Source of the DNA: Scyliorhinus canicula
Taxonomy: Eukaryota
Direction of reading: 5' to 3'
NCBI RefSeq assembly: GCF_902713615.1
Contig: NC_052160.1
Span: 24,639,856 to 24,703,855, forward strand
DNA: 64,000 nt
The notes below the pieces were generated by a model. The model made no database searches. It saw only the letters and a list, made by a program, of their open reading frames with translations, and had not been told where the DNA came from. The position numbers and the translations under genes are program-made. How positions within the stretch are numbered: the stretch's first letter is position 1; each line of letters opens with the position of its first letter. Below, in pieces: positions 23,968 to 64,000 of the stretch.

Positions 23968-24741
23968 CTGGTAAGAATGAAAGGACAACATTAAGAGCAC
24001 ATTCCCAGCACCTCCTGGTCCCATCCCTGCAGATTAAAATTAAAACAATGCAAGAGCAGTAGATTCAAATATGTATTTGTCAACAGCAGACTAGTTTACA
24101 CACTGCTATTGTCTTATCACCGCATCATGCATTCTGAAAATACCCATTCTGCTCACTACCCAAACAAGATGTTTGTTAGCCTCCCATTAAAAAATAAAAA
24201 AGACTTGCAATTCTATAGTCTTTCGCATTTTAAACAAAATACTTTACAGCTAATGAAGTGATTTTGAAATGCTGTTATTGTTGTAACGTAGGAAATAAAT
24301 TGAAGTCAGAGCCCTTGTCCTCATCTATAAATAGCCCCATGGACTTTCCCCTGTCCAAATCAACAACCCTCTACATTTCTTCTTGACTGTCCCACTTTTA
24401 ACATTCTCTTTCAAATATTGTACGCGTATGATTCTGGCCTTCTGTGCTCTGAGGCAAAGCTTTCAGCTGCACTGGATCAGCTCTTTAAACTCTGCATCAC
24501 CCTGTCCTTCTTTAAAATCCAGTTCATAACGCATTTCTTTGACACAGCTCACTCCTATTAACCCATCACTTCCTGTCTTGGTAACAATTATTCTTACCCT
24601 AGTTACAAAGACTGTTGGTACAATTCTTCTGTTAAAAGCAGTATGTACACACAGCTATTTACAAATAATCTTCGAAAGTGCAATGCCTACTGCACACTTG
24701 TGTCCAGTGCACGAGTGTGTTCCTCCCCATTATAATGGCGT

Positions 24742-25070
24742 GGCAGCACGGTAGCATTGTGGATAGCACAATTACTTCACAGCTCCAGAGTCCCAGGTTC
24801 GATTCCCGGCTTGGGTCACTGTCTGTGTGGAGTTTGTACATTCTCCCCATGTGTGCGTGGGTTTCCTCCGGGTGCTCCGGTTTTCTCCCACAGTCCAAAG
24901 ATGTGCAGGTTAGGTGGATTGGCCATGCTAAATTTCCCTTAGTGTCCAAAATTTCCCTTAGTGTTTGGTGGGGTTACTGGGTTATGGGGATAGGGTGGGG
25001 GTGTGGACTTCCAAGAGCCGGTGCAGACTCGAGGGGCCGAATGGCCTCCTTCTGCACTGTAAATTCTATG
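24742..25070 (+). mobile_element. HE1-like tRNA SINE with CR1-type tail
   Basis: Same family as the 22602 copy. Confidence 0.9.
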
Positions 25071-25330
25071 ATCCTGATTATATGGATTGGAGGAGCTCAT
25101 AAAACTCCTCCTCCAAACAGGACTAACCTGTCCAATGGTTGGTATAAAGATGGTTGGAAGCAAAGAAGAAGTATTTACTTCAGAGCCTATCAATGTTAAT
25201 CATTCAGCCTTCAACTACTTCACACAATTCTCCAAGGAAAGAATGTGAAAATACAAAAACAGTACTGCCAACTGCAGATTACATGTACATTGCAAATTAA
25301 CTGTTGATATTGAAGGTGTTGTCATAATAC

Positions 25331-25433: not shown

Positions 25434-26048
25434 CTTTCAAATGAATAAACATAAATTTGTGACATGCAAAAACACTTATTTGTTAACACAAATGTGACTA
25501 AAGTAACTTCTAATTCAGGTTCACAATTAAATTCTGAACAAATTTCACACTTTACCAACAAATCTGTAGCAACTATTAAAGCTCTCAATTTTACATAAAT
25601 CATCCCAGCCTTGGACTTATATTTAAGATTTTAAGCAAGTAGGTTGTTGTTAGCTTTTTCATTCAGGGTCAGTATGAAGTTCTCTCAGTTCATGAACAAT
25701 ATTAGACACAAACTAAAGCTTCACAAACCAAAGAAAAGCACACCAGTCGACTTTTAAACCTAATATTCAAATTATTCAGTGTCAAACTTTGGGCAATTTG
25801 CTTACTTAGACCAGCCTTCAGATTGCCCATACTCTCATTATTGAGGTTCCTTCCAGCCAGCAGTTGCAAGACTTTCAAAACAAGTCTAGGCTGACTTCAA
25901 ACCCAAGTCAAAGTGTGGAAAGGTCAGTTTGATATCCTACAGTAACAAACATGTGCTTTATTATTTAGTACAGGATTGCATCACTAATTCCTACACGTGT
26001 ATGCCTGCAGAATTCACTACGTTTTTTAAGACGTTACCACAAATGAAA

Positions 26049-26387
26049 GGGCAGCACGGTAGCATGGTGGTTAGCATAAATGCTTCACAGCTCCAGGGTC
26101 CCAGGTTCGATTACCGGCTGGGTCACTGTCTGTGCGGAGTCTGCACATCCTCCCCGTGTGTGCGTGGGTTTCCTCCGGGTGCTCCGGTTTCCTCCCACAG
26201 TCCAAAGATGTGCGGGTTAGGTGGATTGGCCATGTTAAATTGCCCGTAGTGTCCTAAAAAAAAGTAAGGTTAAGGGGGGGTTGTTGGGGTTACGGGTATA
26301 GGGTGGATACGTGGGTTTGAGTAGGGTGATCATTGCTCGGCACAACATCGTGGGCCGAAGGGCCTGTTCTGTGCTGTACTGTTCTAA
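26049..26387 (+). mobile_element. tRNA SINE, second tail type (gaagggcctgttctgtgctgtactgttcta)
   Basis: Near-identical to the 58396-58730 copy. Confidence 0.9.
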
Positions 26388-35450: not shown

Positions 35451-36203
35451 CTGGCACGAAGGATAAATTGTTTCCATTGATGTGGGGTCAGAAACCAGAG
35501 GACACTGATTTAAGGTAACTGGCAAATTATTGAGTAAGGGAAAAATGGATACTTTATTTCTACTTGAGTGAGTAGTTGTGATTTGGAATGCAGTGTCTGA
35601 AAGGGTGGAAACATAATAGGGTAGCTCTTTTCAAAGAGCAGACACAGGCCCAATGGGCCAGATGATGCTGCACTTTTTTCTTTTCTAACTCTAACCTTCA
35701 ATGATTCCTGTGATTATTTATTGTGTAAACTGGGTGTAGAAAGCCAAAGTACATTACAATTAGTAATTTTGTGTCTGTGTGAGATTCCTCTGGGTGCTAC
35801 CGTTTCCTCCTCAGTCGAAAGATGTGCAAGTTGGGTAGATTGGCCATGTGAAGTTGCTTCTTTATGTCCCGATGCTTAGATGGGGTTGGGGAGGGGGTGG
35901 GCCTAGGTTAGGTGCTCTTGCGACAGGTCGTTGCCAACTCGATGGGCTGAATAGCCTCCTCTGCACCATAGGGATTCGATTCTATGATCCCTGACAGGCA
36001 TTTCATCTCCCTGATTCTCATTCATAATACAAATAGAGAAAAGAATTTGCATTTGTTTAGCTTGTGTAGCTTTAAGAGTTGCAATATACTTCTATCGACT
36101 TTTGAATCCCAGTAACTGTTGAAATACAGCAGCCAATTTGCACACAGCAAGGTCTGACAAACAACGATGAGAAAAATGACTACTTATTTCATTGGTTTTT
36201 CAG

Positions 36204-36410
36204 GGTGCAGGCGAGTGTCCAGCACTCCAAAACTTGGAATCAAGGCAAACAGAAATTCTGAAACGTCTGTATGAGTTGAAGTCAGTTGTTGATGGGCTCT
36301 CGAAGACTGTCCTTACACCAGATGCTGACCTTGATGTTGCAGAAATCAACCACGCCTGTCTTCTGCCAACAATCCATACTGCAGCTAATTTAGAGTCCGT
36401 ACTGGGAAAG
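36204..36410 (+). CDS. AIMP2: AIMP2 exon 2 (leucine zipper)
   Basis: [38 protein letters not shown]; 207 nt, phase 0-0. Confidence 0.96.
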
Positions 36411-36554
36411 GTAAGTTTGAATCTCAACTCTTTTCTTGTTGAACAAGCAAGTGCTTTAGGGATGAACTTAATGGAGAAAAAGAAATGTGGAATTTCTTCA
36501 GCATCCTTCATGGCCACTGGATGTCCCAAAGCTCAGAGATGGCTGAGGCACTGA

Positions 36555-42306: not shown

Positions 42307-42393
42307 AACTATAGAAATTCTGAATGTGCAAGTTTTGAAGTTTGCCTGTGTGTTTGTTAGACCTTTCATGTACAAACTCTTTTTTTTTGGCAG

Positions 42394-42776
42394 TGCACAA
42401 ACCTCAGATGAAGTTCAGCATCCAAAGCATGTGTTCCATCGAAGGTGAGGGAAATGTTGCCCGCTTCCTTTTTGCCCTACTTGGCCGTAGATATGATGCA
42501 GTGACCTCAACACGGATCGACAACTGGGTGGATGTTGCCATCTTCCAGCTAAAAAAGGGCAGCAGCAAGGAGAAGGCAGCTGTGCTGCGTTCCTTGAACT
42601 CCGCACTCTGCAAGAACCCCTGGGTTGTGGGAGTTGATCTGACACTGGCTGATGTTGTGCTATACTGTGCCTTGAGGCAGGCGGAGATTGATGGTTTTCC
42701 AGCCAATGTCCAGAGATGGGTTAAATCCTGTGAGAATCTAGCATGCTTTAATCTAGCACTAAAGCTGCTGAAGTAA
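42394..42776 (+). CDS. AIMP2: AIMP2 exon 4 (GST-like C domain, stop)
   Basis: [24 protein letters not shown]...[15 protein letters not shown]; total CDS 924 nt. Confidence 0.97.
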
Positions 42777-45330: not shown

Positions 45331-45580
45331 AAATGCAATATGTGAAATTGAATTGCTCCGATGAGAAACTGGATAATGCTCACTTCTCCAGATCAACTCA
45401 TGGGCGTGCTAATAAAACTGCATTCTTAGAAATCACCTTTTTGTAAATCTCTTTCCCTCATTTGTCAATGGTTCTTACGGAGAAAAGCAAGAATGCTGAC
45501 ATGAAGTTTATTTGTGTTGGATAAGTTTCTAATCTTGCTGTCTAAAACCAACTTCAAAGAACTAAGCTTTTCACCCCTAC

Positions 45581-45814
45581 CTCAGGTGAATTATGGAAGA
45601 GTTCACTGGCCAACATCTCATCTGCACTCGGTCTGCAGGCAGCAATTCCACTGGTTAGTCTCTTAACATATTTAGCATGTACAGGCCACCGTTGTGTAAA
45701 GTCTCCTGGAATGTGGCATTCTCGAAGCGCAGTGAGCGTCTTTATCTTTTCCATCACTGTTCTAAATGGCTGGAAGAGCTCCAGTAAGATGATACCGACA
45801 CTGTACATATCTGA
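45581..45814 (-). CDS. EIF2AK1: EIF2AK1 exon, kinase subdomains IX-XI
   Basis: SDMYSVGIILLELFQPFRTVME...RPSADEMLASELF; 234 nt. Confidence 0.96.
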
Positions 45815-52990: not shown

Positions 52991-53170
52991 ACAACTTGAT
53001 ACAATTAAATTGCAACAGCAGTCACACATCAGAGAGTTGTAAAAGTGCTGTAAATGTTCAGTTGCAGGGAGAAAAACTTTGCTAAGAGCTTTAGGAGTTT
53101 ACTCTCCACATGGAGGGGAAATGAAGAGTTTTTCACTCACCGAGATGTAGCTATGATCTGCAATACTCAC

Positions 53171-53291
53171 CAGTTACTTTGGTTGGTGCTGGCCATTGAT
53201 CAGAAGTCTCAGCGATTATGTCATTGCAGGCCAGTCCAAAATCCCCAATCCGAACATGGTAGTCAGAGCCATGGAGAAAAATGTTCCTTGG
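53171..53291 (-). CDS. EIF2AK1: EIF2AK1 exon, subdomains VIb-VII
   Basis: [22 protein letters not shown]; 121 nt. Confidence 0.96.
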
Positions 53292-54019
53292 CTTTAAGAG
53301 AGAGCATTGTGAGTTAAGCTTACTTTGGCATGTCTTTATCATAAACTAAGTAGCTTTAATGGCTTGAATTGTAGAATGTTACAGCACCAGCGGAGAGCAT
53401 CTGATCCAGCTTGTCTGTAGTAATTATTTTTCAGAGCTATTGGAATGTGCTCCCCTATGCTGTAAAATTCTATTGTATAACTACTACAACAAAATATTTC
53501 AATCATCAGAAGGTGATCAAATATACAGTAGCTCCCTTGTACTGCTTTCTTACCTGAAAAAATAATTTGTGGTATGCACTTGGTTGTACGGAGGGGCAGG
53601 GGACGAGCATATTTGGTATTTAAATGGGTATTTGCCATGACAAATTCAGTTGGCACGGTGTTACTTGATGAGATCAGTTAAATGGCATCAGGTCACTCTG
53701 TTAATTCCGAAAACCACCTTCGGAGTGTAACATTGCAATCTGAATTCCAAACGGAACACGAAGATTGTGATGTTACAATCTGTTACCATTGCGATGCTAA
53801 ACAAATCAAAATTGTGCGGTTCCAACCGCTGCCTCCTAACAGGAAACCTTTCCCACACATCAAAGCAAGGAGGGAGTCTGCAAGACTCTCAATCTGATCA
53901 CATCTAAGCGACAACAATCAGTTTTCCCACAGATCAGTTCCACGAAGAATGCATAAGGAGGGAATATTCTGATCCTGAAGTCATTTTGTACAAAATCCCT
54001 GCTTAAGAACCTTCCAAAA

Positions 54020-54184
54020 ATGTGCGAATGCCAGGCTGAGTTTAACGATCTCCATGCCAAGCTTCACGATGCTATTATGCAAGGAGACAAAGAGAATATC
54101 AAAAGGTTGCTGAAGGTCCATCCAATCAATGATCCCATTACTATCTGGAAAAACTGTGCCTTATTCCCCATACTTCCAGCTCAG
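54020..54184 (+). CDS. ANKRD61: ANKRD61 exon 1 (nested antisense in an EIF2AK1 intron)
   Basis: LHAKLHDAIMQGDKENIKRLLKVHPINDPITI resembles the ANKRD61 N-terminus; cag|gtaac donor. Confidence 0.85.
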
Positions 54185-55539
54185 GTAACTCCAGCAATTA
54201 ATTCAGATAATCATTCACTTTCTCTTAAGTGTATCAGAGATTTTACATAAAATCTATAACGGACGACTTTAAAATGATCTAATGATAGCATTTAGCCTTC
54301 CTCATTTTTTGAACTTGCATCCCAACTATCCATCCATCCAATTCACTTCCCCCACCTAGTGGTGCACTAAGGCAGACTTTTGTCTGTTTCCATAGCTAGT
54401 AATTCCAGGAATAGGCCACCAGTCTGTTGCCAGGGGCTTATTCACATGGCGGGGGGCTACTACACAGCATCCCAGCTATACCTGGGGATAATACTCCATG
54501 GAGTGTTGCAAGAATCATGGGATTCTTTCCAAATCCCTTGCCACATAAAAAACTTGTCAGTAGAAATCAGTAGAAACAAGCCTCCAGCTTCTATCAATAG
54601 AAGCAGAGCAATCCCTAAATCGTAGACTGATGCAGACAGAAGGGGGACAGGTCCACTGAGTTAGAGCTGGCCCTTTCGAAGAGCAAATGAATTAGTTCAC
54701 TCCTCTGCTCTTTCCTCAAATTCCTGCACTTATTTTCTCCTTTCAGTACCTATTCAGTTCCATTTTGAAAGTTACTATTGAACGCTTCCACCATCCCATC
54801 AGGCAGTGCATTCCAAATTCTAACTACTCATTGCATAAAATTATTTTTGTTCATGTTGCCTCTGGTTCTTTTGACATTCACTTAAATCTGTGTCCTCTAG
54901 TTATCAACCTTTCTAGCATTTCTAAACAGTTTTACTTTATTTACTCAATCTAAATTCATCATTTTAAACACCTCTGTCAAACCTATACCTTTTTGATCAA
55001 TTTGTCAAAATAAAAGAAGATTGTCCTCTGATCTCAAATAGATCCATATTTGCCAGGTCCCAAGTGTAAAGATGATCATTCCACTTTCCTCAAGTGAACA
55101 CCAGCATAAATTTGATGGGCTGAATGGCCTCTGGTCCTGTTACCATTCTATGAGGTATTCGTCTGGATGGACTTCAAAAAGACATTTGATAGAGTTAGGG
55201 TAAAGGGCTGATACTCAGAATGTGACTAGGGGCATCTGTGTTGGGACCTCAGCTATTAATGATTTAAATGACGGGATAAAGATCCACATATCGAAATTTG
55301 CCAATGACACAAAGATAGGAGGTAACATTTAAATCAATCAAATGAATGGGCAAAACCGTGGCAAATTAATTTCAAAGTAAGTAAATATGAGGTCACTGAC
55401 TGTAACTAACAGGGATGAAACAGGGTACTTTCTTTATAATGAAAAACTAGAAACAATGAGACTTGGGGGTCTGGGTACAGGCATTATAAAAAAGTCATGA
55501 GCACGTACAGAAAACAATCAAAATGGCTAAAGGAATTAG

Positions 55540-56090
55540 AGTCATAGAATTATACAGCACAGAAAAGGCCCTTTGGCCCATTGCATCTGCGCCAGTCAAA
55601 AATAACCACCTAACCATTCTAATCCCATTTTCCAGAACTAGGTCCATAGCCTTGTATGCCCTGGCATCACATCTAAATACTTCTTAAATGTTATGAGGGT
55701 CTCTGCCTCCACCACCTTTTCAGGCAACAAACTCCAACCACCCTTTGGGTAAAAATGCTTTTCCTCACGTCCCCTCTCAACCTCCTGCCCCTTACTGTAA
55801 ATCTATGCCCCCTGGTCATTGACCCTTCCACCAAGGGGTAAAGTTTGTTCCTGTCTACTCTATCTATGCCCCTCATAATTTTATATATCTCAGTCTCCTC
55901 TGCTTCAAGGAAAACAATCCAAGTCTATCCAATCTCTCTCCATAACGAACACTCTCCAGCCCAGGCAACATCCGAGTAAATCTCCTCTGCTCCTTTTCCA
56001 GGGCTATCACGTCCCTCCTGTAATGTGGATTCCAGAACTGCACACAATACTCTAGCTGTGGCCTAACCAACATTTTATACAGTTTATAAT
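55540..56090 (-). mobile_element. CR1 LINE 3' fragment
   Basis: LVRPQLEYCVQFWNP, RRFTRMLPGL, TRGHRF. Confidence 0.85.
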
Positions 56091-56105
56091 ACTGTATTTA
56101 CTGTT

Positions 56106-56408
56106 AGCACGGTAGCACAGTGGGTAGCACTGTTGCTTCACAGCTCCAGGGTTCCAGGTTCGATTCCCGGCTTGGGTCACTGTCTGTGTGCAGTCTGCAT
56201 GTTCTCCCCGTGTCTGCGTGGGTTTCCTCTGGGTGCTCCAGTTTCCTCCCACAAGCCCCGAAAGACGTGCTGTTAGGTGAATTGGACATTCTGAATTCTC
56301 CCTCAGTAGATCCAAACAGGTGCTGGAATGTGGCTTCTCGGGACTGTTCACAGTAACTTCATTGCAGTGTTAATGTAAGCCTACTTGTGACAATAAAGAT
56401 TATTATTC
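56106..56408 (+). mobile_element. tRNA SINE, fourth tail type (cacagtaacttcattgcag...gtgacaataaagattattatt)
   Basis: HE1-like head and core with a distinct 3' half ending in TTA repeats. Confidence 0.85.
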
Positions 56409-56419
56409 TTATTACATAC

Positions 56420-57345
56420 AATACTGGCCCTTATATCCAGAGCACCAGAATACACAGGGTAGAAGTTACGCTTCGACTGTATCAGATCCAGGTAAGACCA
56501 CCCCAGCAACATTGTGGACAGTTCTGGGCACCACACCATAGGAAGGATATATTGGTCTTGGAGGGAGTGCAGCGTAGATTTCCCAGAATTACACCTAACC
56601 TCTAAGGACCAAATTATAAGGAGCGATTAAACAAACTAGGATTGTATTCTCGAGAATTTAAGAGTTTAAGGGGTGAATTGATTAATGTTTCAAGATATTA
56701 AGGAGAACAGATAGGGTAGATAGATACTGTTTCTGGTGGTTGGTGTGGACTAGGGAGCATAATCTAAAAATTAAAGGCAGAAGTTTCAGAAACTAAATTA
56801 GAAAACACTTCTACTCACAATGGGTGGTAGAAGTGTTTAACTCTTCTTCAAACAACAATTCGTGTTACATCAATTGTAAATTTAAAATGGAGATAGATTT
56901 TTGTTATCCGAAGGTATTAAGGGGCATGGCGCAAAAACCATATGGAGTTCAGTCACATCAGCCATAATCTCAATGAATGGTGGCACGGTAGCACAGTGGT
57001 TAGCACTGTGGCTTCACAGCTCCAGGGTCCCAGGTTCGATTCCCGGCTTGGGTCACCGTCTTTGTGGAGTTTGCACATCCTCCACGTGTCTGCGTGAGTT
57101 TCCTCTGGGTGCTCCGGTTTCCTCCCACAGTCCAAAAATGTGCAGGTTAGGTGGATTGGCCATGCTAAATTGCCCAGTGTCCAAAAATGTTAGGAGGGGT
57201 TACTGGGATAGGGTGGAAGTGTGGGCTTAAGTGATGTGGTCTTTCCAAGGGTCAGTGCAGACTCAATGGACCAAATGGCCTCCTTCTGCACTGTAAATTC
57301 TATGAATGGCAGAGCAGGCTCAAGGGGCTAAATAGCCTCCTCACA
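56420..57345 (+). mobile_element. CR1 3' fragment with an HE1-like SINE inserted at ~56982-57305
   Basis: LYQIQVRP..QFWAP, LEGVQRRF; SINE head and tail. Confidence 0.8.
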
Positions 57346-57880
57346 TAAGCTATCTAATAAGGAAGTCTGCTGATTGGGCTCAAAGAGAAAAAGTTCCTTT
57401 AAATGGAGAATACTCCCAGATTAATTTTCTTAATCCCAAGAGTGAAGTTATGAGGTGTTCCATTTTAAATATGATAAAGGGGAAAGAAAACGCATTAAAT
57501 AGTCAGCCAGAGTTCCTACTCCCAATCGTGACCCCTCCTGGTAAATTCAGGTATGCAGACAGCTAATGAGGGTGGAATCAGACTAAGTCCTGGTTCTCCC
57601 CCACCACAGTTGTACAGCGAGCTGTGACTGCTACTGTCTCAATTTCACTACAGGATTGACGAGACACACAGATCTGTAATCCATCACACGTCAAAGACAA
57701 CAAGGAAAAAGCGGTTGCAATAATAAATGAGCGGTGATATTAAGGCGTAACATTCTCTATCTAACCTAAGCTGATAAATTTTAAGCAAATTCAATTATTT
57801 AAGACAATCTCCAAGAAGCAAATACTTTTCAAAACAGTGTTATGAGTCTAATATTTGTAATACATTTCTATCATCCTAAG

Positions 57881-57975
57881 GGATTAGCCATCCTTCCAAT
57901 CCACTTGGCTGCAACATACAGAAAGGCAAAGAGTTTACAATGCTTACTTCAACTAAAGGCTGATATAGAGGCGAG
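57881..57975 (+). CDS. ANKRD61: ANKRD61 exon 2
   Basis: GLAILPIHLAATYRKAKSLQCLLQLKADIEAR ankyrin repeat; taag|...|gtaag; 95 nt, phase fits exon 3. Confidence 0.88.
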
Positions 57976-58395
57976 GTAAGTGATCCAGTTAAGCATTCTG
58001 ATCTGTTCTGGTAGTTCTTGAGAGGTGTGCGTGAGGCCTTTCTAGATGGGATGGGAGATGGGATGGGACAAGGGTCCTCGGTGGACCAGAACTAATATTC
58101 AATATTTAATCAAAATGATGATGGTGCCATGGTAGTAAAAGAAAGAACTTTGCACTTACAACCCCAGGACAGCCCAAAACACTTAACTTTACAGCCATTG
58201 ATTATTTTGTTTAAAGTAACAATGCAGTTATGTTGGTTGAAGGATAAATATTGATCCCAGGACTTGGGGGGGAGAACTCTCCTGCTCTTCAAATTTCCAC
58301 CTTAAGGGATCTCTGGTATCCATCTGAAGGGCATATGGCACCTCGGCAAGTCTGACAATGCAGCACTCCATACTGCAGTAGAGCATCACCCAGAT

Positions 58396-58730
58396 GGCAG
58401 CACGGTAGCATGGTGGTTAGCATAAATGCTTCACAGCTCCAGGGTCCCAGGTTCGATTCCCGGCTGGGTCACTGTCTGTGCGGAGTCTGCACGTCCTCCC
58501 CGTGTGTGCGTGGGTTTCCTCCGGGTGCTCCGGTTTCCTCCCACAGTCCAAAGATGTGCGGGTTAGGTGGATTGGCCATGCTAAATTGCCCGTAGTGTCC
58601 TAAAATGTAAGGTTAAGGGGGGGTTGTTGGGTTACGGGTATAGGGTGGATACGTGGGTTTGAGTAGGGTGATTATTGCTCGGCACAACATCGAGGGCCGA
58701 AGGGCCTGTTCTGTGCTGTACTGTTCTATG
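58396..58730 (+). mobile_element. tRNA SINE, second tail type
   Basis: Near-identical to 26049-26387. Confidence 0.9.
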
Positions 58731-59029
58731 TGGCTCACAAATATTTGGAGTGGAACTTGAACCCATGACCGTCCATAAAAATGCTGAAAAGATGCAGCTG
58801 AGAAAGAACCATCCTGTCTAATCACACTTTCCAGTAGTCTGTACGTAGGTTACTGCACTTTAAGTACACATCCAAGTACTTTTTTAATCTGATGAGGGAT
58901 TCTGCCTCTCCTACTCTTTCAGACCCCCCAGCATCCCAATTCAAAACAAAAGGGTGCTTTGCACTGAGCCACGACTGACACCAAGTTATTGTTGCAAGTT
59001 ATTGCCCAGAAACTGACATTTTCACAGAA

Positions 59030-60250
59030 CTGTTACCGTGTAGATGGAGGCCATTTGGCCCATCTTATCAGCACCAGCTCTGCAAAAAAGCATCATGACT
59101 TAGTGACATTCCCCTGCCTTTTCCCTGTACCCGTGCACATTGTTCATCTCATGACCTCTTGAATGTCTCAATTGAATCTGCCTCCACCACACTTCCAGGC
59201 AGTGCATTCCAAACCCAAACCACTTGTGTGAGAAAGCCTTTTCTGACATCACATTTGCTTCTTTTGCAAATCACTTAAGATCTGTGCCCTCAACCCTTTT
59301 AAGATTAGGAACAGTTTCTCCCTATCTACTCTGTCCACCCCCCCTCATGATTTTGAACATCTCTATCAAATCTCCTCTTGGCTTTCTCTCCAAGGAGAAC
59401 AGTCCCAACCTCTCCAGTGCATCCTCACAGCTGAAGTTTCTCATCCCTGGAACAATACTTGTAAACCTCTTCTGCACTCTCTCCAATGCATTCACACCCT
59501 TCCTATAGTTATGGAATCCAGAACTGTGCACTATATTCCAAACGGTGTCCAACATGTGTCTTGTATAGGTTCAGCATAACCTCCTTGCTCTTGCACTCTA
59601 AGTCCCTATTAATAAAGCCAAGAATATTATAGGCTTTATTAACTGCTCTCCCCACCTGTCCTGCCACCTTCATGATCTATGCACATAAACACCCAGGTCC
59701 CTCTGCTCCTCACCCCCTTAAGAATTTTACCTCTTATTTTGTATTGCCTCTCCATGTCCTTCTTATCAAACTGCATCACCTCACACATCTTTGCATTGAA
59801 CTTCCTTCACCACGCTATCTGTCCACTCCTCCAACTTGTTTATTTCCTTTTGAATTTCTACACTGTCCTCTTCACAGTTTACAATATTTCCATGTTTTGT
59901 GTCATCTGCAAACTTTGAAATTGTCCCCTGCACATCATTAATATATATTAGGAACAGCATGGGTCCCAAAAAGGACTTTTGGGGAACATTTCTACAAACC
60001 GTCCTTCAGCCCGAGAAATATCCATTACTCTCTGCTTCCTTTTATTCAGACAATTTTGTATCCACATTGTTACTATCCCTATCATTCTATGAGCTGTAAC
60101 TTTTCTCACAAGTCTGTTGTGTGGCACTGTATTGAATGCATTCTGCAAGTCCAAGTACACCACATCAACAGCATTACCCTCATCAGCCCTTTGTTACCTC
60201 CTTAAAACACTATTAGTTAAACACTATTTCCTGTTTAGAAATCCATGCTG
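59030..60250 (-). mobile_element. CR1 LINE RT / 3' fragment
   Basis: VYLDLQNAFNTVPH, FLIYIND, KFADDTK, LERVQKRFT. Confidence 0.87.
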
Positions 60251-60394
60251 TGTTATAGAAATTCACTTCCTGGGCTTCTTAAAAGCTACATAATGACTGT
60301 ACTTAAGCTACAAATCACATTGCAGGCACAAAATGCATGTGATTTATTGAGATATGTGATATCTAATCATTTGCCTCTTCCGAGATAAAAGCAC

Positions 60395-60720
60395 TCCAGA
60401 GCAGCACTGTCAAAGGTGCCATCTTTTAAATGAGACATTAAACTCAGGCAGGCCCTGTCTCCCCTCAGGTGGATCCTAAAACCTCTATTTCCAAGAGCAG
60501 AGGAGTTGTCCCTGGTGTCCTAGGTCAAATATTTATTCCTCAATCAACATGACAAAAAAAGTATCTGGTCATTATCACATTGCTATTGGTGGAAACTTGC
60601 TGTGTGCAAACTGGCTGCCTCGTGTCCTACATTCCAATTGACTACAATTTAAAAGTGCTTAAGTGGCTCTAAAATGCATTTGTCGTGAGGTTGTGAAAGG
60701 CACTATATAAATGTAAATCC
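60395..60720 (+). mobile_element. Deu-domain (SacSINE1/AmnSINE1-like) SINE
   Basis: gcactgtcaaaggtgccatcttt..gagacattaaac..caggtgga..ctggtcattatcacattgc..aggcactatataaatg. Confidence 0.7.
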
Positions 60721-60765
60721 CCACTATCAAAAATTCTCATGGGTTTTCTTTTCTCTTTGCCTTAG

Positions 60766-61795
60766 AGATGCCTTAGGCCGAACAGCACTGCACTTGATCA
60801 TTGTGCACTGGCCCAACATCATCCAGGACTGGATCGTACCAAAGACCAAGTTCGAGAAAGCCATGGCGGGCATGCAGAGTCGGGCTGAATGCTGCCTGCG
60901 GCTACTATGTCAGCATGGGGCGCAGGTCAATGTGGCCACCCAGAGCAGGAGCCAGGACACAGCAATGCACCTGGCTGTGCGTCATGGGGCTTGGCCGGCA
61001 GTGGCTATCCTGGCGCGGTATTGTGGCAACCTAGAAACAGCAAATCAGCACGGTATGACCCCACTGCACATGGCCAGTGGGCTGCTGGACCGGCGAATGG
61101 TGGAGGAGCTGCTTGGCCGGGGGGCACGGCTGGACAGCAAGGTGGCGGGCAGCGGCAGCACACCGCTCCAGCTGGCTGTCTGTGCCGCCTCGGGCAAGGG
61201 CGCACAGCAGCTGGGGGCTGGCCTGGACTGTGTGCGGGTGCTCCTGGCAGCAGGCGCCAGTGTTGTTGCCCAAGACCAGCATGGGAGGGCAGCAGTTCAC
61301 GAAGCCTGTTTCGGGGGCCGGGAGGAGCTCATTGACCTGTTGCTGGAGCATGATGCTGACCTGAGCCTGTGCACAGAGCTGGGCGAGTCACCCCTCTCCC
61401 TCTTCCTGGAACGTAAACCTAACCTCCGGTGCAGCCGCCTGCTGGCCAAACTGCTCAGCCTCTCCTGTCCTTTGCGGCTCGCCAGCAAGGAGGGGGGCCA
61501 GTTGCCTGGTGGACTGCTCGGCCCAGAATTCCGTCAGTACCGGGAGTTTCTGCTGGCCCTGAGCCAAGAACCACCAGCCCTTCAGGATCTCTGCCGGGTG
61601 GTAGTCAGGAAGGTCTACGGCCACCGGCAGAGGCAACGTCTCAAAGAGATCCTACCCACTTCAGTGTGGCAGTTTGTGTATGGTTACCAGGACTATGCAA
61701 AGAGACTGGCAGAGATCGCAGTCAAGCCAATAGAATGGCCAGACCGTGAGGGTCAAGGCGATCTTGACAACAGCCTGCTCCACATGCACCTCTGA
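60766..61795 (+). CDS. ANKRD61: ANKRD61 exon 3 (ankyrin repeats plus SOCS-box-like C-terminus)
   Basis: Ankyrin motifs GRTALH, GMTPLHMA, GSTPLQLA, GRAAVHEACFGG, GESPL; pyrimidine tract and ttag acceptor; total 429 aa. Confidence 0.93.
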
Positions 61796-61954: not shown

Positions 61955-63060
61955 TTTACACGGTGTTTACAGCACAAAAACAAGTTATTCAGCCCGTCTG
62001 GTTCTAAACCAGTCTTTATGCTCCACACGAGAACCCCCCCCCCCCCCCCCCCCCATCCCTTTCCATCACACTCTATCAGCATATCCTTCTATTCCTTTCT
62101 CCTCCACGTGTTTATCCAGCTTCCCCTCCAATGCATCTATGCTATTCGCCTCAACTACTCTTTTTGCAGTAGCAAGTTCCACATTCTCCCCACTCCCTGG
62201 GTCAAAGCCTTTCTCTGGAGTTCTCAAATGGATTTATTAATGACCAATTTATAATTATGGCTCCTAGTTCTGGTGTCCCCCACAAGTACAAACATCTTCT
62301 CAATGTCTCCTCTGTCAAACTCTTTCACAATATTAAAGCTCTCTATTCAGTCACCTTCCAGAGAATAGAGCCCCAGCCAGTTCAATCTTTCCTGATAGGC
62401 AAGACCTATCTTGGCATCATTCTCGTAAATCCTAAATTCTCCAGTGCCTCTATATTCTTTTTCTACTAGAACAGAATTATTGACTACTGAAAAATGAGGT
62501 CTAACCAAAATTCTGCAGAAGAAGCACAACTTTCCTGCTTTTCAATTCTCTACCCCTTGCTTTAAGTCTTATTAATCTGCGTTACTATTTTGACAATTTA
62601 CCTCTATCCTCAGATCCCTCTGTCTCCCCTACACCATTTAAACACAAATTTCAAAGGAGTACCTTTTTACCAAAATGTACTATCTCATACTGATCTACAT
62701 TGAAGGTTATTTGCTGATTACATCCACCCTGCAAGTTTATTCATGTATTCCTGCATTTTGTTTAATCCTCTGTAATAACCTCACCCATTAATTTGGTGTC
62801 ATCCGCAAATTTTGAAATTTCACTTTTGATTCCAGAGTTCAAGTCGTTTCAGTAACTGGTGAATGGCAGTGTTCCCAGCAGGATTCTTTACGAAACATCA
62901 CTTTCCAGCTTTTACCAGTCCAAGTAACTTACCTTTTCCCCCTACACTTAGTTTCCTACTTTGTAACCAACTTGCTATTCATTCTGCTACTTGTGCCATT
63001 ATCACATGCTCTGATCTTGGTCACAAATCTACCCTGCAGTGCTTTATCAAAGGTAGCCTG
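61955..63060 (-). mobile_element. degraded CR1 LINE fragment
   Basis: Reverse-strand KFADDTK (ggtgtcatccgcaaattt) and CR1 3' UTR-like end. Confidence 0.75.
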
Positions 63061-63850: not shown

Positions 63851-63894
63851 TCGATACATCAAAGTCTTGCATGAACACAGTGATACGTACTCAC

Positions 63895-64000
63895 CTTCAA
63901 GTCTCTATGCATAACACCCTTGGAGTGGATAAAACACACTCCCTCAAGCAGCTGGCGAAATATATGAATGGTGCAGTCAGGCTCCACTAAACTAAATGCA
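63895..64000 (-). CDS. EIF2AK1: EIF2AK1 exon ending in HRDLK (probably truncated by the window edge)
   Basis: AFSLVEPDCTIHIFRQLLEGVCFIHSKGVMHRDLK|gtgagt. Confidence 0.92.

Follow-up and report, generated by a model that had tools for sequence, protein, structure and literature searches.

A putative ASB-type SOCS box at the C-terminus of ANKRD61, a transcribed gene lying antisense within an intron of HRI in the shark Scyliorhinus canicula

The ASB family, counted as ASB1-18 (PMC3779351, PMC11263391), comprises proteins in which a stack of ankyrin repeats is followed by a C-terminal SOCS box, a unit of three helices (H1-H3) packed on the substrate domain (PMC3779351). The BC box of such units has the consensus (S,T,P)LXXX(C,S,A)XXXPhi, Phi being hydrophobic (PMC3355856), and in ASB9 the residues Leu258 and Cys262 reach into the cleft of Elongin C, Pro255 and Pro256 contact Elongin C, and the cullin-box motif is L-V-L-P at 281-284 (PMC3779351, Muniz et al.). 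Two cullin boxes have been described, the Cul5 box LPPhiP, with a fourth-position proline (PMC4812663, PMC3355856), and the Cul2 box PhiPXXPhiXXXPhi, found 8-23 residues after the BC box (PMC3355856). In this study, a stretch of 64,000 nucleotides from the shark Scyliorhinus canicula (the window; contig NC_052160.1, forward-strand positions 24,639,856 to 24,703,855, numbered here from its first letter) was analysed, which contains at 54020-61795 on the plus strand the shark ortholog of ANKRD61, a transcribed three-exon gene. In contrast to the ASB family members, ANKRD61 is not counted within ASB1-18 (PMC3779351, PMC11263391) and its name refers only to ankyrin repeats. The gene lies antisense in an intron of HRI (EIF2AK1), and its product joins an ankyrin stack to what appears, from profile comparisons and predicted structures, to be a true ASB-type SOCS box, so that ANKRD61 is likely to be an ASB-type substrate receptor of a cullin-RING ligase (CRL).

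The C-terminus of the protein is the end of a 333-codon open frame starting inside exon 3 and reads, on the plus strand from 61568, E-P-P-A-L-Q-D-L-C-R-V-V-V-R-K-V-Y-G... through ...L-K-E-I-L-P-T-S-V-W-Q-F-V-Y, with the stop codon at 61793-61795. The SOCS box as a whole was placed at 61568-61684 (+). Its BC box with the Pro-Pro lead-in, E-P-P-A-L-Q-D-L-C-R-V-V-V (61568-61606, +), corresponds to SOCS helix H1 (model residues 272-284) and to positions 1-22 of the Pfam SOCS_box profile, and the cullin box L-P-T-S-V-W-Q-F-V-Y (61652-61681, +) to helices H2 and H3 (model residues 289-305). In the motif A-L-Q-D-L-C-R-V-V-V at 61577-61606 the Leu, the Cys and the final hydrophobic residue of the BC-box consensus are all in place, as had been stated for ALQDLCRVVV in a preliminary description of this locus; the first position is Ala in this protein and Ser or Thr in several sharks and rays, in snakes and in most mammals. 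When ASB9 is aligned to the profile of alignment A2, made of 31 orthologous ANKRD61 C-termini, the shark P-P-A-L-Q-D-L-C and ...I-L-P lie opposite P255, P256, L258 and C262 of ASB9 and opposite its L-P. ANKRD61 and ASB9 therefore have the same Pro-Pro-x-Leu-x-x-x-Cys BC box, a similar spacer from the BC-box Cys to Leu-Pro (20 residues in ANKRD61 and 21 in ASB9) and a cullin box without the additional proline (LPTS in ANKRD61, L-P-E-D-L-K-Q-F-L in ASB9). The resemblance to a cullin box noted earlier was confirmed, both by the alignment to ASB9 and by the conservation of Leu-Pro from shark to mammal.

N-terminal of the box, the ankyrin-repeat stack, presumed to be the substrate-binding domain, occupies 60767-61465 (+) according to Pfam (Ank_2, Ank, Ank_4, Ank_5 and Ank_3, expectation values (E) 5e-28 to 2e-11) and to the AlphaFold2 model described below. 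Between both parts a linker helix was predicted at 61523-61567 (+; model residues 253-267), which falls, in the profile alignments, on the helix that precedes the box in ASB7 and ASB18. The box is followed by a tail (61685-61792, +) with a confidently predicted helix (model residues 308-319) and then a disordered end (residues 323-342, predicted local distance difference test score (pLDDT) below 50); this extra helix and tail distinguish ANKRD61 from typical ASBs. Mammalian ANKRD61 terminates about 18 residues past L-P. The last 20 codons of the shark gene (61733-61792) encode a terminal motif, approximately [DE]-L-D-x-x-L-x-x-[ML]-H-L, which is common to sharks, rays and chimaera and is not found in mammals.

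Profile searches connected this region to SOCS boxes. With the Pfam profile SOCS_box (PF07525, 39 positions, curated cut-off 23.5 bits) the window protein scored 21.2-22.6 bits (E 3.5e-4 to 1.2e-4), the Hemiscyllium ortholog 28.4 bits, which is over the cut-off, and the chimaera, the coelacanth and a caecilian 16-18 bits; E <= 0.01 was obtained for 6 of 30 orthologs. Automatic annotation with Pfam already flags the box in one shark ortholog at least (P0002), and pipelines have thus not missed the SOCS-box signal of ANKRD61 altogether. When a hidden Markov model (HMM) of A2 was searched against all PDB sequences, ASB7 (E 1.4e-5) and ASB9 (E 5.6e-4 to 2.2e-3) were retrieved, with nothing else below E 0.3, and the alignments fell on the SOCS boxes of ASB7 and ASB9, for ASB9 through the cullin box. 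Comparison of A2 with the C-terminus of a fish ASB18 by hhalign gave 91.6% probability and E 8e-7, and exon 3 and this ASB18 aligned collinearly by BLASTP, starting in the ankyrin repeats and reaching the BC box. Language-model features gave SOCS_box clusters as the three best named matches of the shark C-terminus (scores 0.92-0.93, 182-193 shared features), the SOCS_box set accounting for 21 of its 100 matches; for one mammalian C-terminus the SOCS_box set also came first, at scores of 0.76-0.82, which are only a lead.

The structure of the exon-3 protein was predicted with AlphaFold2 (model m0ad1a34c01ac, to which all model residue numbers refer), with pLDDT 86.5 and a predicted template modelling score of 0.84. 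The ankyrin stack forms paired helices over residues 7-232, mostly with pLDDT above 90, and after it and the linker helix the box forms helices at 272-284, 289-295 and 298-305 (pLDDT 84-91), a predicted arrangement which matches the H1-H3 three-helix pattern of SOCS boxes. Upon re-alignment of the PDB matches with VIA-align, ASB9 followed model residues 4-307 up to the point where its chain ends (Z 21.4-21.8, 256-261 residues) and ASB8 followed residues 63-308, the model thus superposing to the C-termini of both, and other ankyrin proteins ended near residue 270. Among the Swiss-Prot AlphaFold models, ranks 1-4 were taken by ANKRD61 of mouse, rat, human and cattle, with alignments extending through residues 305-315, ranks 5-19 were all ASB8, ASB18, ASB16, ASB11, ASB13 or ASB10, and ASB4, ASB7 and ASB2 were found among ranks 21-29; these ASB matches reach residue 305-309 of the model and come within a few residues of their own ends. 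The 68-residue C-terminus folded alone reached pLDDT 77.7. In a Foldseek search with this isolated domain, of which only the composition of the list was used as evidence, about three quarters of the 37 rows were ASB7, SOCS1, SOCS2 or pVHL chains from Elongin BC complexes, with a root-mean-square deviation (rmsd) of about 2 Å over about 41 columns. The SOCS2/SOCS1/CIS family shares with ANKRD61 this three-helix fold (rmsd about 2.1 Å over 41 columns, 32% of the aligned residues being identical in SOCS2) and the BC-box consensus; it differs in having SH2 instead of ankyrin repeats as the substrate domain and in its canonical LPPhiP Cul5 box (PMC4812663), the fourth-position proline of which is missing from ANKRD61.

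Orthologs of ANKRD61 were found in sharks, rays, chimaera, coelacanth, caecilians, mammals, teleosts and snakes (E 1e-211 to 1e-41), and also in birds and lizards; the window protein is 94% identical to the Mustelus ANKRD61-like protein and 43-46% identical to mammalian ANKRD61. Among 30 orthologs, ranging from sharks to mammals, the BC-box Leu and Cys were invariant, as was the cullin-box Pro, and the Asp between Leu and Cys and the Leu before Pro were nearly so. In a larger motif survey of 79 proteins (42 best sequence matches and 37 from a profile search), LxxxCxxxPhi followed by a spacer and [LMI]P was present in 70. The distance from Cys to Pro is exactly 20 residues in most family members, 17 in rays and 19 in some teleosts. 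The mammalian box, which had been described as more degenerate in the human protein, has both motifs intact, S-L-E-D-I-C-K-R-N-I (S-L-x-D-I-C-K-x-x-I) and L-L-P, though it is invisible to profiles. The expectation that the box would be clearest in shark was correct, the Pfam score going from 28.4 bits in Hemiscyllium to 22.6 in the window and 16-18 in chimaera, coelacanth and caecilian, with none in mammals, teleosts and a snake.

Two observations were made in the same alignments. The orthologs of rays and sawfish (P0006, P0007, P0009, P0010 and P0011) were noted at the loop where ASB9, compared with other SOCS boxes, has three inserted residues (PMC3779351). In snakes, the N-terminal ankyrin region that other vertebrates conserve is missing from ANKRD61 (P0040-P0042), its place being taken by a different sequence; its cullin box has M-P for L-P, and its BC box is perfect, S-L-Q-D-I-C-K-F-N-I.

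Several results weigh against this assignment. The Pfam score of the window protein is 0.9 bits under the cut-off, the match extending over no more than positions 1-22 of the 39 in the profile, which correspond to the BC box, and the same profile gave no match with the C-termini of three mammals, two teleosts and one snake. The Pfam comparison, proposed in the preliminary description as a check, was accordingly positive for Hemiscyllium, just under the threshold for the window and negative for mammals, teleosts and snake, and in this the ANKRD61 box differs from those of the ASB family, being near or below the Pfam threshold and undetectable by profile in mammals. A mammal-only profile searched against the PDB gave no SOCS box, and a teleost-only profile gave no significant one, ASB7 appearing only at E 0.54. 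Since mammalian or teleost sequences alone give no profile match, the box has been left unannotated, and the bridge to the SOCS-box family appears, from these sequence comparisons, to need the slowly evolving sequences of cartilaginous fishes, chimaera and coelacanth. With those included, the profile comparison of orthologs was positive, for ASB7 and ASB9 by the A2 HMM and for ASB18 by hhalign. A library-wide search with the 68-aa C-terminal profile found only its own family at E <= 0.001: of the 40 matches at this level, nearly all of those checked were ANKRD61-type, with three to four weak unrelated ones at the bottom. ASB boxes, at about 28 bits, are sub-significant at that database size, and this search is therefore neutral. 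In the Foldseek search with the isolated C-terminus all E values were above 0.5. Moreover, the protein does not end with the box, 37 residues following ...QFVY in the shark protein (a tail of about 35 had been given, its presence correctly), and the fourth-position proline of LPPhiP is missing (L-P-T-S); the earlier statement that the first Pro of the LPxP motif is absent was wrong, this Pro being present and the second one, at the fourth position, lacking. Finally, binding to Elongin BC and to a cullin is inferred from homology and a predicted fold.

Taken together with the profile and fold results, the ANKRD61 C-terminus is best described, on sequence and model evidence, as a homologous ASB-type SOCS box and not as a chance motif. 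The description of ANKRD61 as a divergent ASB-like protein with ankyrin repeats and a SOCS box is supported by homology and by fold, and the gene adds to the known ankyrin plus SOCS-box kind, being no new kind of system. By analogy with these relatives, Elongin BC and cullin binding, a ligase function and a substrate are likely. In the mechanism proposed, Elongin C of the Elongin BC adaptor would receive H1 (Pro-Pro-x-Leu-x-x-x-Cys), the cullin box with its Leu-Pro would bind, together with Elongin C, the cullin N-terminal domain, most likely that of Cul5-Rbx2 and possibly that of Cul2-Rbx1, and the concave ankyrin face would bind a putative substrate, which would be presented to the RING-bound E2 and then ubiquitylated. 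This ligase function is proposed because of the established role of SOCS boxes (PMC4812663, PMC3355856, PMC3779351). That ANKRD61 is a functional and overlooked "19th ASB", a receptor of an Elongin BC-cullin-RING ligase in all jawed vertebrates including humans, with Cul2 as well as Cul5 as possible cullins, is in our opinion somewhat probable.

As regards the cullin, the fourth-position proline has been reported as important for, or favouring, Cul5 (PMC3355856), and for SOCS1, whose Cul5 box is incomplete, Cul5 binding was undetectable (PMC4812663). No ortholog in the set surveyed matched LPPhiP: most mammals have L-P-V-K and most teleosts L-P-E/D-K/R, and a fourth-position Pro was found only in three rays (L-P-G/T/R-P), where the third residue is not hydrophobic. 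ANKRD61 might instead be a Cul2 receptor which uses the same motif in the manner of a VHL box, with a logic like that of the ankyrin-containing FEM1 receptors of CRL2. Besides the missing proline, absent throughout the orthologs save for the Pro of the three rays, L-P-T-S-V-W-Q-F-V fits the Cul2-box consensus and starts 15 residues after the BC box, inside the 8-23 range, so that ANKRD61 resembles pVHL, FEM1 and other CRL2 receptors, in which a BC box is followed at a distance of 8-23 residues by PhiPxxPhixxxPhi (PMC3355856). The fold search with the isolated domain also brought up pVHL chains. However, the nearest relatives by sequence and by fold are ASB7, ASB9, ASB8 and ASB18 and not VHL-box proteins; the ANKRD61 sequence profiles lead to ASB boxes, and the match of FEM1B and FEM1C to the model is confined to its ankyrin part (about residues 1-269). 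In addition, ASB9 is equally proline-less (LPED), yet its L-V-L-P motif mediates Cul5 binding (PMC3779351), and LPPhiP is therefore not defining for ASB membership. The consensus motifs of Cul2 and Cul5 boxes overlap (PMC3355856), which together with the binding of Cul5 by the proline-less ASB9 means that the motif alone cannot assign the cullin. The earlier remark that the box is closer to the Cul2 pattern was right as to the fit with the Cul2 consensus, but ASB9, a proven Cul5 binder, has a box of like kind. As all close relatives are ASBs, Cul5 would be the more likely partner, and the use of Cul2 is considered rather unlikely.

The box could also be an evolutionary relic of an ASB-like ancestor, its helices now only capping the ankyrin stack or binding Elongin BC without a cullin, and ANKRD61 would then be a plain scaffold. 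The loss of the profile signal in mammals and teleosts and the incomplete Cul5 box would agree with this, the SOCS box of ASB9 likewise packs on its ankyrin domain (PMC3779351), and the literature treats ANKRD61 as uncharacterised or as a scaffold (PMC10088045, PMC13279872). A mere cap would not be expected to keep the BC-box Leu and Cys and the cullin-box Leu-Pro across jawed vertebrates while neighbouring residues vary freely, nor a fixed spacer length, and this pattern is the one expected of a binding interface; the relic is accordingly regarded as improbable, and a SOCS box still engaged in ligase assembly is preferred.

A full-text literature search on ANKRD61, including its spelled-out name, gave no link to SOCS boxes, Elongins or cullins, and the matches for ASB19 were unrelated to ANKRD61. 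The protein was described in 2022 as "completely uncharacterized", with immunostaining most prominent in oocytes (PMC10088045), and in a transcriptome study of 2026 as a protein-interaction scaffold down-regulated in oligoasthenozoospermia (PMC13279872). The conserved SOCS box provides for this uncharacterised jawed-vertebrate gene a testable hypothesis, that of a cullin-RING ligase substrate receptor. If true, it would add one more receptor to the E3 ligase catalogue and would bear on germ-cell proteostasis and on ligase-recruiting degraders.

The exons of the shark gene were located by tblastn with the Mustelus asterias ANKRD61-like protein P0001 (94% identical) as guide. Exon 1 (54020-54184, +) starts with the ATG, has 55 codons, ends in phase 0 and is followed by a GT donor at 54185-54186; it is 91% identical to residues 1-55 of P0001, and its sequence was also inspected. 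Exon 2 (57881-57975, +), which was placed by tblastn and sequence and encodes the first ankyrin repeat, is bordered by AG at 57879-57880 and GT at 57976-57977. Exon 3 (60766-61795, +) encodes most ankyrin repeats, the SOCS box, the tail and the stop codon at 61793-61795, and is 94% identical to residues 87-429 of P0001. The three exons (54020-61795, +) sum to 1290 nt, that is 429 codons and the stop, with GT/AG at all borders, and the spliced length of 429 aa given earlier was reproduced. The junction between exons 2 and 3 (57975 joined to 60766) was found in contigs of runs X1, X2 and X3, from three studies; the joint skips 2790 bases with GT..AG ends, and the contigs cover exon 3 and the 3' untranslated region to at least 61950 with zero mismatches. 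The SOCS-box exon therefore belongs to a spliced mRNA. The evidence for expression consists of these spliced Logan contigs from three runs, whose RNA status was inferred from the splice itself, and both the gene model and its expression are regarded as shown. In the raw oligo-dT run X22 there were almost no reads over the ANKRD61 exons, which, in comparison with the three runs with spliced mRNA, suggests a tissue-restricted expression. Judged by the lengths remaining beyond 61950, the three spliced contigs should terminate at about 61977-62046, and a run of about 25 C is located at 62036-62060, about 250 bases past the ANKRD61 stop codon.

ANKRD61 is flanked by two exons of HRI on the minus strand, for which open reading frame (ORF) limits and not exact splice sites are given. 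The exon with the DFG motif (53151-53342, -), upstream of ANKRD61 in plus-strand coordinates, reads ...K-P-R-N-I-F-L-H-G...I-G-D-F-G-L-A-C... and had as its top PDB match 9rhh, eIF2-alpha kinase 1 (E 2.1e-10; GCN2 at 6e-4), and the exon with the HRDLK motif (63859-63987, -), downstream, matched Pfam Pkinase positions 99-126 (E 6e-7). These exons are adjacent in the kinase domain, and ANKRD61 is therefore antisense within one HRI intron. In Mustela erminea and in the teleost Plectropomus leopardus, ANKRD61 is annotated inside an opposite-strand gene with HRI2_3H and Pkinase domains, so that the fixed antisense nesting previously claimed was established by flanking exons and annotations for shark, teleost and mammal. 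A GST_C-bearing exon upstream (42342-42773, +) resembles AIMP2, matching the Mustela neighbour of HRI/ANKRD61. A link of this arrangement to stress-response proteostasis had been suggested: ANKRD61 might regulate HRI and the integrated stress response, or transcription of both genes might interfere. The opposite-strand nesting common to this shark, Mustela and Plectropomus would suit such a coupling, but an intronic gene is hard to move and conserved nesting is expected from gene structure alone, and the near-empty X22 run beside the three runs with mRNA suggests, from ANKRD61 coverage alone, a tissue-restricted expression. The coupling is unsupported speculation and is thought very improbable.

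A chance match of a short pattern, for which it could be said that LxxxCxxxPhi is short and common and that the Pfam score is just under threshold, was rejected as having almost no likelihood in view of four independent lines of evidence, the reciprocal profiles, the three-helix superposition, the language-model features and the invariance over more than 30 orthologs.

With regard to the remainder of the window, more HRI-like exon ORFs were seen on the minus strand, and a conserved gene order was noted at 36192-36554 (+), 42342-42773 (+) and 45554-45808 (-). An ankyrin protein of 416 aa from a JGI metagenome contig (P0157) was retrieved with the profile of ANKRD61 C-termini at E 4e-4; Pfam SOCS_box matches it weakly (18.3 bits, positions 2-35), its Cul5 box is the canonical L-P-C-P, and it may be an ASB of an unsampled eukaryote. 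Intron 2 of ANKRD61 contains at 58268-58835 a high-copy repeat, with a summed contig depth of about 0.4-1.4 million in three RNA-like runs and with raw reads mapping to it by the thousand, in which variants and internal joints are numerous. The same translated peptide, ...G-P-R-F-D-S-R-L-G..., turns up again on both strands across the window (e.g., 24678-25199, 25929-26249, 56120-56356, 56901-57230 and 58410-58595), and the 58268-58835 repeat looks like an abundant element of the short interspersed kind (SINE-like) embedded in many transcripts. In the same intron, 59322-60163 (-) has ORF fragments typical of retrotransposon reverse transcriptases (...Y-L-D-L-Q-N-A-F-N-T-V-P-H...), which from their sequence look like remnants of a long interspersed element (LINE).

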